Sequence record: OM634661.1
DNA: 64,000 nucleotides
Strand: one strand, 5' to 3'
The translations under genes were made by a program, and so were the position numbers. How positions within the stretch are numbered: position 1 is the first letter of the stretch; every line of letters starts with the position of its first letter. This document shows positions 30,832-58,424 of the stretch, one piece after another. The notes beneath the pieces were generated by a model. The model ran no database searches, was not told where the DNA came from, and saw only the letters and a list, made by a program, of their open reading frames with translations.

Positions 30832-32601
30832 ATGGAACTAGATGAACTTTTGGCAGTAGAAGGTGTAGAGGAAATCAAGCAACAAGATGAAGTTAAAATT
30901 GACGTTGGAGAAAGAGAAGAGATTAAGCCTGAAATCGCTTCAAGACCTCCAGTCTTCATGCAAAAGATGAGAGAAACAATCCAGTCTGTAAAAGAATACT
31001 CTTGGAGTAGAGGAGAAATGGGTGGACTTGATTGGGGTATAGAACAATTCAATGAAGCCTTTGAAGGATTAAATACTGGTGTTCACTTGATCGGTGGACA
31101 GTCAAACGTTGGTAGCTGAGGCATTGACTATAGCAATCTAAGTGGTTAACCTCTCTAAAAAGGAGATGGAAACCATGAAGAAAGAATTGAAAGACAAAAT
31201 TGTTGAGCTTTATAGCGAGGGTGTATCAAAAAGAAGCATAAGAAATTGTATAAGTTCCATTTAATTGGTACTGAATTATTCTTGGAAAAAGCAAGAATTG
31301 AAATGAATATGCAGAAAGTCAAAAAGTATGCAAAAGGAAAAACATTTGACTTAGCATATGGAGGTCGATTGAACTTAAAAAAGTTGTATTCTTATTTATA
31401 TAAAGATGCAACAGTGTACTTACCTCGTAAAAAAGAAATTTTTCAACAATGTCTTTAATAGTCAATACAATAGGCCTGCCGTCCATCGGTGAAAGTCGTT
31501 GGATAATTAGAGCGAAATGAAGCGGGAAACTCCTCCCTCATGTTTTAGAACATGCACAGGACAACCCGAACCGAAGTGTTAGAATAATCTAGTCGTCATA
31601 TGAAAAGTATGAACGATTGACGAAAGTCAGCACAGGGGCAACGCATAGGTGATGACCGTATAGGAATAATTCACCCACGAGGTCGCTCTACCTAAGTCAC
31701 TCATTTGTGATATGGTAAAAAGGTATGCTGGACTAGATTGTAATGATCTAGAAGTACAGATAAAAAGCTGTACGATAACAAATCGAAATCAGGAATCTGT
31801 ATGCAAATTGGGTTAATGGTTGCACAAAAGAATAGAGTGGTTACGAAAGAAAAGCCGAAAAAAGCATTTGTGATTTACTTCTCACTAGATGATAGTAACA
31901 ATGAATTGCTTCCTAGATTGATTGCTATTGATCAAAGAATCCCAATCAATGCTGTAAGGTTCCCGAAGAAATACCAAGACCATGTGGAGTATATGGAACG
32001 ATTAGAAAAGGGATATGAAATGCTAGATGACATTGTAGAAAACTTTGCAATGAAAGATGTAAACGAAGGTTCTAGTATTGAGTATATCGAAAAGACAGTT
32101 GAAGAATATTACAATGAATTGATGAGAGTAGATGAAAATTATCAAATCGTAATTATGGTTGATAACTTCCACGACATTACAGTTGATGAAATTAAGTTTG
32201 GTTCAGATCAAAGTGGAAAGTACGATCATATTGCAGATCAGCTATCAAGAATTGCAACAAGGTTTGATGCACCGATCATTTGTACAGCAGAGTTCAGAAA
32301 GATAAACGGAAACAAAAGACCTACTCTTGATGATATTAGAGAGACAACAAAGATTGTATACGAAGCAAAAGCAATCATTCTTTGTTATAACGAAGTAGGC
32401 ATTAGAGGACAACAATCTAAAGTGTTCTACAACAAAGAAGGTTCAGATGAAAAACAGCCAATCTTTGAAGCAGATGTAAGAAAGAATAAATTCAGCTCAT
32501 TTAAAAGTAGAATATTCTTTGAGTTCATACCAAGTATGTCTTACTTTAGAGAAGTGCCTAAAGCAGGAGCTGTTATCTACAATCAGCAATTAGGAGGTTA
32601 A
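30832..32601 (+). CDS. dnaB: DnaB-like replicative helicase; exons 30832-31113 and 31786-32601 (365 aa after splicing)
   Basis: Splicing rebuilds Walker A (LIGGQSNVG|KSGICMQI). Exon 2 has YFSLDD, Walker B (IMVDNFH), PIICTAE and IVYEAKAII...KNK. Confidence 0.85.
31114..31785 (+). mobile_element. Group I self-splicing intron (672 nt; extra helices between P7 and P3', IA-like)
   Basis: 5' exon ends in U, intron ends in G. P3 TAGAGCGA (31508-31515) / TCGCTCTA (31683-31690). P7 A(C)GCATA (31641-31647) / TATGCT (31724-31729) with the G-C guanosine-binding pair. P2 with GAAA loop (31481-31504). P9 hairpins at 31733-31751 and 31754-31773. Confidence 0.92.
31175..31458 (+). pseudogene. Degenerate LAGLIDADG-type homing endonuclease remnant in the intron L1 loop
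   Basis: AAGGAG RBS, then a 29-aa HTH-like ORF (31175-31264). A shifted frame continues with FDLAYGGRLNLKKLYSYLYKDATVYLPRKKEIF, resembling the C-terminus of LAGLIDADG HEGs. No catalytic motif remains. Confidence 0.65.
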
Positions 32602-58003: not shown

Positions 58004-58038
58004 TAAATACATCCCCTTAAATTATATTATTATTTAAA

Positions 58039-58112
58039 CAAGAGTGACAGGAGTCGAACCTGTAACCAATGGTTTTTTTAGACCACTACTCTACCAATTG
58101 AGCTACACTCTT
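58039..58112 (-). tRNA. tRNA with Trp-like body (A1-U72, G73) and an aberrant 8-nt anticodon loop CUAAAAAA
   Basis: Acceptor AAGAGTG/CACTCTT; D arm GCTC-AATTGGTA-GAGT; anticodon stem GTGGT/ACCAT; T arm ACAGG-TTCGACT-CCTGT; 74 nt; no CCA. Confidence 0.8.
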
Positions 58113-58196
58113 ACGATAAAAGAGCCAGACGCATCCAGCTCTAGTAAGTATGCGCCGCAGCAACATACCGCAATTAATAATGCTTTGATACCTACA

Positions 58197-58308: not shown

Positions 58309-58319
58309 TCATAGGTAAA

Positions 58320-58391
58320 TGGACCTTACAGGATTCGAACCTGTGACCGAGGCGTTATGAGCACCTTGCTCTACCGCTGAGCTAAAGGTCC
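58320..58391 (-). tRNA. tRNA with CAU anticodon, probably tRNA-Ile2 (lysidine type)
   Basis: GGACCTT/AAGGTCC acceptor, loop CTCATAA, A73. The 5' sequence GGACCTTTAGCTCAG matches Bacillus tRNA-Ile2 as I recall it, rather than tRNA-Met. Confidence 0.9.
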
Positions 58392-58424
58392 AAGAATCCG
58401 TATAGATTAATATGAGATAATAAT

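Follow-up and report, generated by a model that had tools for sequence, protein, structure and literature searches.

A probable group I intron within the Walker A codons of a DnaB-like helicase gene in Bacillus phage vB_BauM_KLEB27-3

The helicase gene and the boundaries of the insert

The stretch of DNA analyzed here (64,000 nucleotides of sequence record OM634661.1, hereafter the window) comes from Bacillus phage vB_BauM_KLEB27-3, and a search on the phage name found no paper on it. All features described are on the + strand. A DnaB-like helicase is encoded in two pieces. The first (exon 1, 30832-31113; 282 nt, 94 codons), taken from the ORF list, ends ...GGQSNVG with GGT as its last glycine codon, and aligns to the N-terminal 97 residues of the DnaB proteins of Bacillus phages vB_BceM_WH1 and Edson. 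The ORF containing it (30832-31119) has the C-terminus ...LIGGQSNVGS followed by a stop, as a preliminary description of the locus had read it. The second piece (exon 2, 31786-32601; 816 nt) is in frame, extends from KSGICMQ... to a stop codon, and carries a match to Pfam DnaB_C (E=9.7e-13). Identity to the WH1 protein is 56% for exon 1 and 65% for exon 2, with no frameshift.

Joining the exons gives GGQSNVG|KSGICMQ in frame, which contains the Walker A motif GxxxxGKS, and the joined GQSNVGKS is colinear with WH1 'DnaB_gp050'. Both the DnaB_C domain and the Walker A GxxxxGK[ST] of a DnaB-family (SF4) helicase are therefore present. Since no N-terminal DnaB domain was detected in the helicase product, the label 'replicative' is based on the annotation and the adjacent primase gene. 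The preliminary description anticipated that automated annotation would call two broken genes, and GenBank indeed lists exon 1 as gp069 'hypothetical protein' and exon 2 as a separate gene, gp070 'replicative DNA helicase'. The annotated start of gp070 is an internal ATG (31801), so that the P-loop Lys-Ser is lost. No start codon in exon 2 lies far enough upstream to retain the P-loop lysine.

The insert separating the exons occupies 31114-31785 (672 nt). It interrupts the Walker A motif in phase 0, with the Gly codon on one side and the Lys codon on the other, follows U31113 and has G31785 as its last base. At the DNA level position 31113 is T, 31114 is A and 31785 is G, and 31786-31794 read AAATCAGGA. 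The DnaB genes of WH1 and Edson are uninterrupted, and their junction reads ...AGQSNIGKSGMCMQ... A blastn comparison with these phages leaves a gap of exactly 672 nt between the two aligned segments, and the codons are colinear on both sides. The insert is thus precisely missing from the intron-free alleles, and their reading frame is intact across the junction. This comparison with intron-less alleles, which had been proposed at the outset, agrees with the exon join, and both match the earlier claim that removing 31114-31785 (after U, ending in G) restores GGQSNVG|KS.

Homology alone permits two cuts, GGT|A...G|AAA or GGTA|...GA|AA, and the mRNA is identical from either. The first is favored by the U/G rule and by the family covariance model described below, whose end falls exactly at 31785, the terminal G (omega G). 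The exon frame within the insert contains 16 stops, the first at codon 2. This TGA (31117-31119), two codons into the intron, terminates translation of unspliced transcripts.

Structure of the RNA core and the P1 loop

The 3' part of the insert (31474-31785) was aligned with 19 distinct relatives from viral contigs (metagenomes), giving 20 sequences. RNAalifold yielded P3, P4, P5, P6, P7.1, P8, P9, and P9.1, and P7 was added by hand. The helices occur in the group I order P3, P4, P5, P6, P7, P7.1, P8, P9, P9.1, are supported by covariation, and include a P3/P7 pseudoknot. Over 47 pairs, 96.8% of the cells are canonical, and 35 pairs show compensatory double changes. None of 500 shuffles reached the values of the alignment, and sliding the 3' partner by 1-3 nt reduced pairing to only 31-39%. 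Folding of the window sequence by itself recovers the same core helices (z=-2.65).

The P2 hairpin (31481-31504; 31481-85/31500-04 and 31487-89/31496-98) comes from the single-sequence fold, and a hairpin is found at this place in every family member. The 5' strand of P3 (31508-31515) pairs with the 3' strand (31683-31690). The two form an inverted repeat and are also paired in the alignment, where compensatory changes are seen at each of six pairs, all 100% canonical. P4, P5 and P5a span 31523-31568 (P4, 31523-26/31565-68; P5, 31531-34/31558-61; P5a, 31539-44/31549-54), P5a being specific to the window. P6 (31571-31636; 31571-80/29-36) carries a window-specific extension of ~45 nt that folds into hairpins. 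Aligned to the family covariance model, the window copy has extra insertions in P5 (22 nt) and P6 (39 nt).

The P7 stem is formed by C-GCAUA (31642-31647) and UAUGC-U-G (31724-31730) and is pseudoknotted with P3. Five of its pairs are canonical in 20/20 sequences, and one covaries between A-U and G-C (14:6). G31643-C31728 is invariant in 20/20 sequences, U31729 is bulged, and the closing pair C31642-G31730 is canonical in 13/20. By analogy, G31643-C31728, beside the bulged U31729, is the candidate guanosine-binding site. The preliminary description had named P2, P3, P7, P8, and P9 without giving their coordinates; such helices do exist, but the bulged C it placed in P7 is, in our model, U31729 on the 3' strand.

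Between P7 and the 3' strand of P3 lies P7.1 (31648-31675; 31648-52/31671-75), with five pairs that are 100% canonical and all compensatory. A stem at this place is typical of subgroup IA, to which the Michel-Westhof classification assigns the extra stems P7.1 and P7.2 (or P7.1a). Many relatives have a nested hairpin resembling P7.1a. No P7.2 stem was seen in the window intron, where just 9 nt (CACGAGGUC) lie between P7.1 and P3'.

The P8 hairpin (31689-31717; 31689-93/31713-17) has five pairs that are 98% canonical and all compensatory. Two bases of its covariation register also belong to P3 when P3 is drawn with 8 bp, which makes the P3/P8 boundary ambiguous. P9 and P9.1 (31733-31773; P9, 31733-39/31745-51; P9.1, 31754-59/31768-73, with the loop GAUAAAAAG) are the best-conserved part of the family, and their exact pattern is matched by more than 115 viral contigs. 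A G is found 1-5 nt past ACGAUAACAAA in every family member. We also sought a P10 pairing in the window intron and identified none.

The 5' strand of P1 (31111-31115, GGUAG) combines the exon end GGU with the intron nucleotides AG, and its partner is the internal guide sequence CUGCC (31476-31480), as judged from the sequence and from RNAduplex. This pairing contains a U31113.G31478 wobble at the splice site. The family alignment has a conserved xGCCGUC here. The GGU/GCC pairing recurs in relatives, with covariation at position -4 (for example GGGU/GCCC in the related locus L093 and AGGU/GCCU in L004) and on the intron side. The energy of the P1 duplex was attained by 6% of shuffles.

An extension of P1 closes the loop that holds the ORF remnants. 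Its 5' arm, AUUGACUAU (31123-31131), pairs with the 3' arm, AUAGUCAAU (31458-31466), as a perfect 9-bp inverted repeat (ATTGACTAT with ATAGTCAAT). Such a repeat is not exceptional by itself, as three perfect inverted repeats of at least 9 bp occur within the same 711 nt, and the extension is marginal when scored alone (z=-1.74). Its support comes from related introns, most of which, among those tested, have an analogous closing helix with a different sequence; of 8 introns scored, counting that of the window, 7 gave a negative z. Two elements of P1 as originally drawn hold up, namely the perfect repeat and the capacity of GCC (31478-31480) to pair with GGU (31111-31113). The register AGGC/GCCU between them is less certain, and RNAduplex prefers GGUA/UGCC plus GCU/GGC.

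The P1 loop had been thought to hold a single internal ORF. Instead, it contains two remnants of a LAGLIDADG homing endonuclease gene. The first (31175-31264) is preceded by a Shine-Dalgarno sequence AAGGAG (31160-31165); its 29 codons encode an N-terminal helix-turn-helix with weak Pfam HTH matches. It matches the corresponding remnant in the related locus L019 (BLASTP E=3e-4), and BLASTP of its 29 residues against the intact endonuclease of locus L074 gave no significant match. The second remnant (31255-31458), in a different frame from the first, represents the C-terminal ~67 residues of the enzyme. It matches residues 192-253 of an intact 266-aa LAGLIDADG_3 protein at locus L046 (BLASTP E=7e-8) and the remnant at L019 (E=1e-12). 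In relatives, intact LAGLIDADG_3 endonucleases of 246-294 aa are encoded inside the same P1 loop, and when the window ORFs are aligned against these both LAGLIDADG motifs are absent. As the gene is reduced to a helix-turn-helix stub and a C-terminal tail, with both catalytic motifs lost, mobility is no longer under selection; the window intron has probably ceased to move and probably survives as a fixed relic because it is spliced.

Related introns and their detection

The window intron has more than 100 relatives, which form a family without a name. They come from viral contigs in IMG/VR and, among cultured phages, from Mammaliicoccus phage phi116 and the crAss-like phage cr118_1. A covariance model (R1) was built from 15 relatives, with the window left out. 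It matched the window end to end at 31474-31785 (184.6 bits, E=9e-48), the sole copy in the 64 kb, with a score inside the range of the other family members (184-265 bits). About 88 of 100 loci gave a match of at least 76 bits covering the whole model. The initial proposal, that a group I intron interrupts the Walker A codons, is supported by this match, by the covariation in the core, and by the absence of the insert from WH1 and Edson.

Members of the family use a GCC guide, carry an ORF within the P1 loop, and show the 3' signature GAUAAAAA-N5-ACGAUAACAAA. The window copy is set apart by its decayed endonuclease and its extra P5 and P6 hairpins; the remnant at L019 is equally decayed. It is also the only copy found in a Bacillus phage helicase, and the closest helicase relatives, WH1 and Edson, lack it. 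In the crAss-like phage cr118_1 a family intron likewise splits the DnaB_C helicase gene between G and KS.

The family model also reaches introns whose group I status comes from Rfam or from experiments. R1 matched the intron of Staphylococcus phage 110 (44.4 bits, E=3e-11), and on the same stretch the Rfam group I model RF00028 scores 106.2 bits against a threshold of 50. R1 further matched, in the Bastille DNA-polymerase gene, the 3' domain of the intron with I-BasI (E=6e-6), and its two best matches on a T4 segment, both weak, are the nrdB and td introns.

A covariance search with group I models had been put forward as a check, and the curated Rfam model detects nothing in the window. Rfam cmscan of the whole window at the gathering threshold, and of 30900-32000 and 31440-31830 (391 nt) at E<=10, gave no group I match, and the Rfam group I model likewise had no match on nine family loci. 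We do not count this miss against the intron, since in T4 controls RF00028 scored td at 40.3 bits and nrdB at 35.7 bits, both under the threshold of 50, and since the family is bridged by R1 to an intron that Rfam scores highly. RF00028 is weak on this intron subgroup.

In several respects the window intron resembles the phage introns of subgroup IA (T4 td and nrdB, the Twort-type introns of Staphylococcus phages, and the Bastille intron with I-BasI). They share an overall design: a U.G pair marks the 5' splice site, the last base is a G, P3 and P7 form a pseudoknot, and an additional stem follows P7 before P3'. The J8/7-P7'-P9-P9.1 region is similar. Like these introns, that of the window lies in an essential DNA-metabolism gene and is inserted in the codons of a catalytic motif. 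However, its host gene encodes a DnaB-like helicase, no P7.2 is seen, and its endonuclease is of the LAGLIDADG type rather than GIY-YIG or HNH, and decayed. In addition, its ORF is in the P1 loop, whereas that of T4 td is in P6a.

The preliminary description noted that phage group I introns are best known from thyA, nrd and DNA polymerase genes and named the DnaB P-loop as a classic site of inteins. The latter point is confirmed by the location of DnaB intein insertion point b in the P-loop (PMC4760082). However, group I introns have been described in helicase genes of the staphylococcal myoviruses Romulus, Remus, K, and G1 (PMC5526547), which makes the finding less unusual than the preliminary description implied. 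They show that a phage helicase gene can carry a group I intron, a likeness drawn here at the level of the host gene.

Across the family, introns recur at the Walker A G|K junction in unrelated phage ATPases. Host genes include DnaB-like helicases, an SNF2 helicase, AAA and AAA_24 ATPases, and large terminase subunits, in phages whose hosts belong to the Firmicutes and the Bacteroidetes (crAss-like). Among 86 distinct 3' junctions, 33 start with Lys-Ser or Lys-Thr, and for five Pfam families an insertion at G|K[ST] was confirmed. These calls come from junctions read by hand together with Pfam matches. An automated search for 5' exon ends ([GA]xxxxG then GGT) proved unspecific, with candidates at 37 of 53 control sites, and was rejected. 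The window intron may be part of a large lineage that is specialised for the Walker A junction GGU|AAR and moves between unrelated P-loop ATPase genes, a tentative reading to which we give slightly less than an even chance.

Proposed splicing and alternative explanations

The region 31114-31785 is very probably a subgroup-IA-like group I intron that is spliced from the transcript of a DnaB-like helicase gene. In the proposed pathway, the exon end GGU would pair with the guide GCC (31478-80) in the pre-mRNA and place the U.G wobble at the splice site, and the long P1 extension would close a 364-nt loop containing the decayed endonuclease gene. The core would fold as P3-P9 with the P3/P7 pseudoknot. 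Free guanosine would then cleave after U31113, G31785 would take the P7 site, and the exons would be joined as GGU-AAA (predicted spliced junction ...GTTGGT-AAATCAGG...), giving one helicase of 366 residues with an intact P-loop. Unspliced RNA would instead yield a 95-residue peptide ending at the TGA at 31117, and any downstream product would lack the P-loop lysine. Helicase function would thus be expected to depend on splicing.

The alternative that survives best is that the insert derives from a group I intron that has lost splicing, so that the helicase is a pseudogene or is made in two pieces and the phage uses another helicase. The degenerate endonuclease, the window-specific insertions in P5 and P6, the lack of an Rfam match, and the separate GenBank genes for the two halves are all consistent with this. 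However, all core helices are intact, and the R1 score lies within the range of the other members. In addition, the reading frame is open in both exons, each of which aligns colinearly with intact homologues at 56-65% identity. A two-piece enzyme is hard to picture, as GKS is split between G and K and exon 2 has no start that keeps the P-loop lysine. We consider loss of splicing unlikely.

An intein-type or free-standing homing endonuclease insertion, whether excised from the protein or retained, would fit an insert whose 672 nt are a multiple of three, a C-terminal LAGLIDADG remnant in the exon frame, and a P-loop that is a known intein site in DnaB (PMC4760082). The DnaB P-loop inteins occupy the same protein motif, and like the window element they are selfish elements lodged in a conserved site that the host gene cannot do without. 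However, an intein is an open reading frame that is removed from the protein, whereas the window element is filled with stops and would be removed from the RNA. The 16 exon-frame stops, beginning at codon 2, and the absence of a Hint or intein domain from every piece rule out an intein, and ~310 nt of the insert are structured RNA with strong covariation. The probability of such an insertion is very low.

An element of another kind (a group II intron or a translational bypass element, for instance) is equally improbable; nothing beyond the presence of an insert points to one, the helix order P3-P4-P5-P6-P7-P7.1-P3'-P8-P7'-P9 with the terminal G and the U.G wobble is specific to group I, Rfam has no group II match in the window, and 672 nt far exceed the known bypass gap, which in T4 gene 60 is about 50 nt.

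The intron at this locus is an ordinary kind of phage element that public annotation has overlooked, and it does not change the accepted view of how group I introns work. With the intron recognised, the locus encodes one helicase of 366 residues instead of a 'hypothetical protein' and a truncated helicase without the P-loop lysine. Other members of this family, which numbers more than 100 introns, may likewise escape the standard Rfam model, and many phage ATPase genes may then be annotated as broken. The finding would add a helicase P-loop to the phage genes that depend on RNA self-splicing, and the DnaB motif that inteins favor here holds a group I intron. If the family is indeed specialised on Walker A junctions, it would be an RNA-level counterpart of the P-loop inteins.

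An interrupted helicase gene

The intron lies at 31114-31785 (672 nt) in a gene for a DnaB-like helicase of Bacillus phage vB_BauM_KLEB27-3 (OM634661.1), which infects Bacillus australimaris and has a genome of 216.7 kb. The assignment to this phage follows from a megablast-level match, identical at 100% of 1851 nt. The gene is flanked by an AEP-type primase upstream and PhoH2 downstream. The ORF starting at 30832 reads ...LIGGQSNVGS-stop and ends at 31119, with position 31113 being the T of a GGT codon. The insert ends with G31785, and from 31786 the sequence continues AAA TCA GGA ATC TGT ATG CAA. As proposed in the preliminary description, removing 31114-31785 restores the frame, joining exon 1 (30832-31113, 282 nt) to exon 2 (31786-32601, 816 nt, in frame) to give GGQSNVG/KSGICMQ (the slash marks the junction), which contains GxxxxGKS.

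In the related phages vB_BceM_WH1 and Edson the gene is uninterrupted and reads ...AGQSNIGKSGMCMQ.... Comparison with these intron-less alleles, suggested earlier as a check, bears out the proposed intron size: blastn gives two match pieces that span 1583 nt in the query and 911 nt in the subject, leaving the query 672 nt longer. Because an A follows each boundary, homology alone leaves the cut site ambiguous by one base; the two possible sites yield identical mRNAs. Exon identity to WH1 is 56% and 65%, with no frameshift. The P-loop of DnaB is a known intein site (PMC4760082). The insert cannot be an intein, since reading it in frame with the exons meets 16 stops, beginning at codon 2.

GenBank contains exactly the two broken genes that automated annotation was expected to produce, gp069 ("hypothetical protein", 30832-31119) and gp070 ("replicative DNA helicase", 31801-32601). 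The latter is started at an internal ATG (31801), five codons past the true exon start, and the deposited helicase therefore lacks the P-loop Lys-Ser. The intron is unannotated in GenBank, and no previous account of this copy was found.

Elsewhere in the window, ARAGORN calls a tRNA at 58038-58113 (minus strand) whose anticodon loop has eight bases and whose anticodon, 'aaaa', has four; the Rfam tRNA model scores it at 60 bits and places an insertion in that loop. At 58319-58392 (minus strand) lies an ordinary tRNA-Met (CAT) gene, which scores 70 bits.

Secondary structure and family of the intron

Matches to the 3'-terminal ~75 nt of the insert occur in Mammaliicoccus phage phi116 and the crAss-like phage cr118_1. 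The exact pattern GATAAAAANNNNNACGATAACAAA, taken from this stretch, is found in more than 115 IMG/VR viral contigs among the matches listed; the window has one exact site, and its sole other match has three mismatches. Two hairpins near the 3' end of the insert vary in sequence from locus to locus while their pairing is kept, and the whole core is common to the window and 22 distinct loci. For an alignment of the window with 19 of these 22 (A3), RNAalifold predicts P3, P4, P5, P6, P7.1, P8, P9 and P9.1, with compensatory changes in 34 of 42 pairs. The P7 stem is beyond this prediction because it is pseudoknotted with P3, and was placed by hand (GCAUA 31643-47 with UAUGC 31724-28). Across all 20 sequences its five pairs are without exception canonical, with one alternating between A-U and G-C (14:6). 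Counting all 47 pairs, canonical pairing holds in 96.8% of cells, and double changes occur in 35 pairs. No column-shuffled control (0/500) reaches any of the four measures, and sliding the 3' partner by 1-3 nt reduces pairing to 31-39%.

The helices occur in the order P3, P4, P5, P6, P7, P7.1, P3', P8, P7', P9, P9.1, terminal G. This is the group I order, and the extra stem (P7.1) is typical of subgroup IA. Folded as a single sequence, the window core yields the same helices (z=-2.65). The core also contains a perfect 9-bp inverted repeat between the P6 extension (31586-31594) and the P9 5' strand (31731-31739), which may be due to chance or may be an alternative pairing that competes with P9.

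P1 pairs exon GGU and intron AG (31111-15) with CUGCC (31476-80), placing U31113.G31478 at the splice site. RNAduplex favors a slightly different register, GGUA with UGCC, one bulged C, then GCU with GGC. The GGU-GCC pairing is constant among relatives and the adjoining positions covary (GGGU with GCCC in L093, AGGU with GCCU in L004, GGUAAUA with UAUUGCC in cr118_1). The 9-bp helix described earlier (31123-31 with 31458-66) is present, but by itself lacks statistical significance. In L046, L071, L074, L093 and cr118_1 the P1 loop that bears the ORF is also closed by a helix, of unrelated sequence, and the z-score of this helix is negative in seven of eight introns tested, including the window (lowest -5.2). 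Given this recurrence, we accept it as a likely feature of the window intron.

A covariance model constructed from 15 relatives, with the window excluded (R1), matches window positions 31474-31785 from end to end (184.6 bits, E=9e-48), stopping exactly at G31785, and finds no other copy in the 64 kb. Of 100 family loci, about 88 match over the whole model with at least 76 bits. R1 also matches an intron of Staphylococcus phage 110 (44.4 bits, E=3e-11), a stretch that is annotated Intron_gpI in its record and scores 106.2 bits with the Rfam group I model RF00028, and, over its 3' domain, the DNA-polymerase intron of Bastille, which encodes I-BasI (24.5 bits, E=6e-6). When R1 is run on a 7.3-kb T4 segment, the two top matches, both weak, lie in the 3' domains of the nrdB and td introns. 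These matches tie the window intron, through its family, to accepted group I introns. With the covariation-backed core and the R1 score, they support the original reading of a group I intron in the helicase Walker A codons.

The RF00028 search proposed in the preliminary description returned no window match at the gathering threshold or, on short slices, at E<=10. At permissive E-values it likewise found nothing in the window, L004, L005 (cr118_1), L019, L046, L074, L093, L095, L100 or L116. The T4 td and nrdB introns score 40.3 and 35.7 bits, below the model's own threshold of 50, indicating that RF00028 has low but not zero sensitivity to subgroup IA introns of phages. This intron family may therefore be missed by Rfam-based pipelines.

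Probable splicing and the decayed endonuclease gene

The P1 loop of relatives encodes an intact protein of 246-294 residues with an N-terminal HTH and with LAGLIDADG_3 domains. The window copy retains only a 29-codon HTH stub (31175-31264) preceded by a good Shine-Dalgarno sequence and, in another frame, a 67-residue C-terminal tail (31255-31458; E=7e-8 to L046); neither LAGLIDADG motif is left. The intron, whose endonuclease gene is dead, probably can no longer move. Its nearest core relative among the matches listed (L019, 428-1100, minus strand) carries the same two-piece remnant, and sits in the TOPRIM motif of a DnaG-type primase (...LMRDG/DPAG...), likewise after GGT.

An intact core, together with exons that are well conserved and free of frameshifts, speaks for an element that still splices. 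By analogy with the established group I mechanism, the most likely course is that exon 1 translation on the pre-mRNA would halt at TGA 31117, the intron would fold, free guanosine would attack after U31113, and G31785 would then direct exon ligation. The ligated mRNA would encode a 366-residue helicase with an intact P-loop.

Insertion sites across the family

Phage genes for DNA metabolism and structural proteins are classic sites of group I introns (review PMC3984707; Bastillevirinae survey PMC11878797). Staphylococcal myovirus helicase genes are listed as intron-bearing (PMC5526547), and in crAss-like phages of the Delta group introns occur in the genes for major capsid protein (MCP), PolB, primase and an ATPase (PMC7886860). 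Considering these examples and the P-loop intein site, the window intron is an ordinary kind of element.

Several loci in the family contain more than one core. In L023 (7675-8186, minus strand) two cores are just 3 nt apart, leaving no room for a normal P1 of the downstream core. L058, L077, L016 and L063 carry 3-5 apiece in the space of a few kb. Such clusters may represent introns arranged in tandem or nested in one another.

Lys-Ser or Lys-Thr follows the intron at 33 of 86 distinct 3' junctions from the family. Reading junctions by hand and checking host genes with Pfam places insertions between the Walker A G and K in DnaB_C helicases (window, cr118_1, L117, L095), AAA (L043), AAA_24 (L015, L006), Terminase_6 large terminase subunits (L093, L046) and an SNF2 helicase (L071). 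Family introns in L004 and L116 are likewise at G/K[ST] of Walker A in phage ATPases, and the host ATPases across these loci are unrelated. In cr118_1 (MT774379) a 337-nt relative (L005 2238-2574) interrupts the DnaB_C helicase of the phage itself at the position used in the window (AGISGSG/KSSFVNT), and the record lists two separate 'DNA helicase' genes. The junction sample grew from three P-loop introns, and common descent gives homologous genes the same sites; the pattern is therefore a lead rather than a demonstrated specialization. The window intron is of practical value for annotation, and its family offers a possible lead, from insertion sites, on introns that target P-loops.
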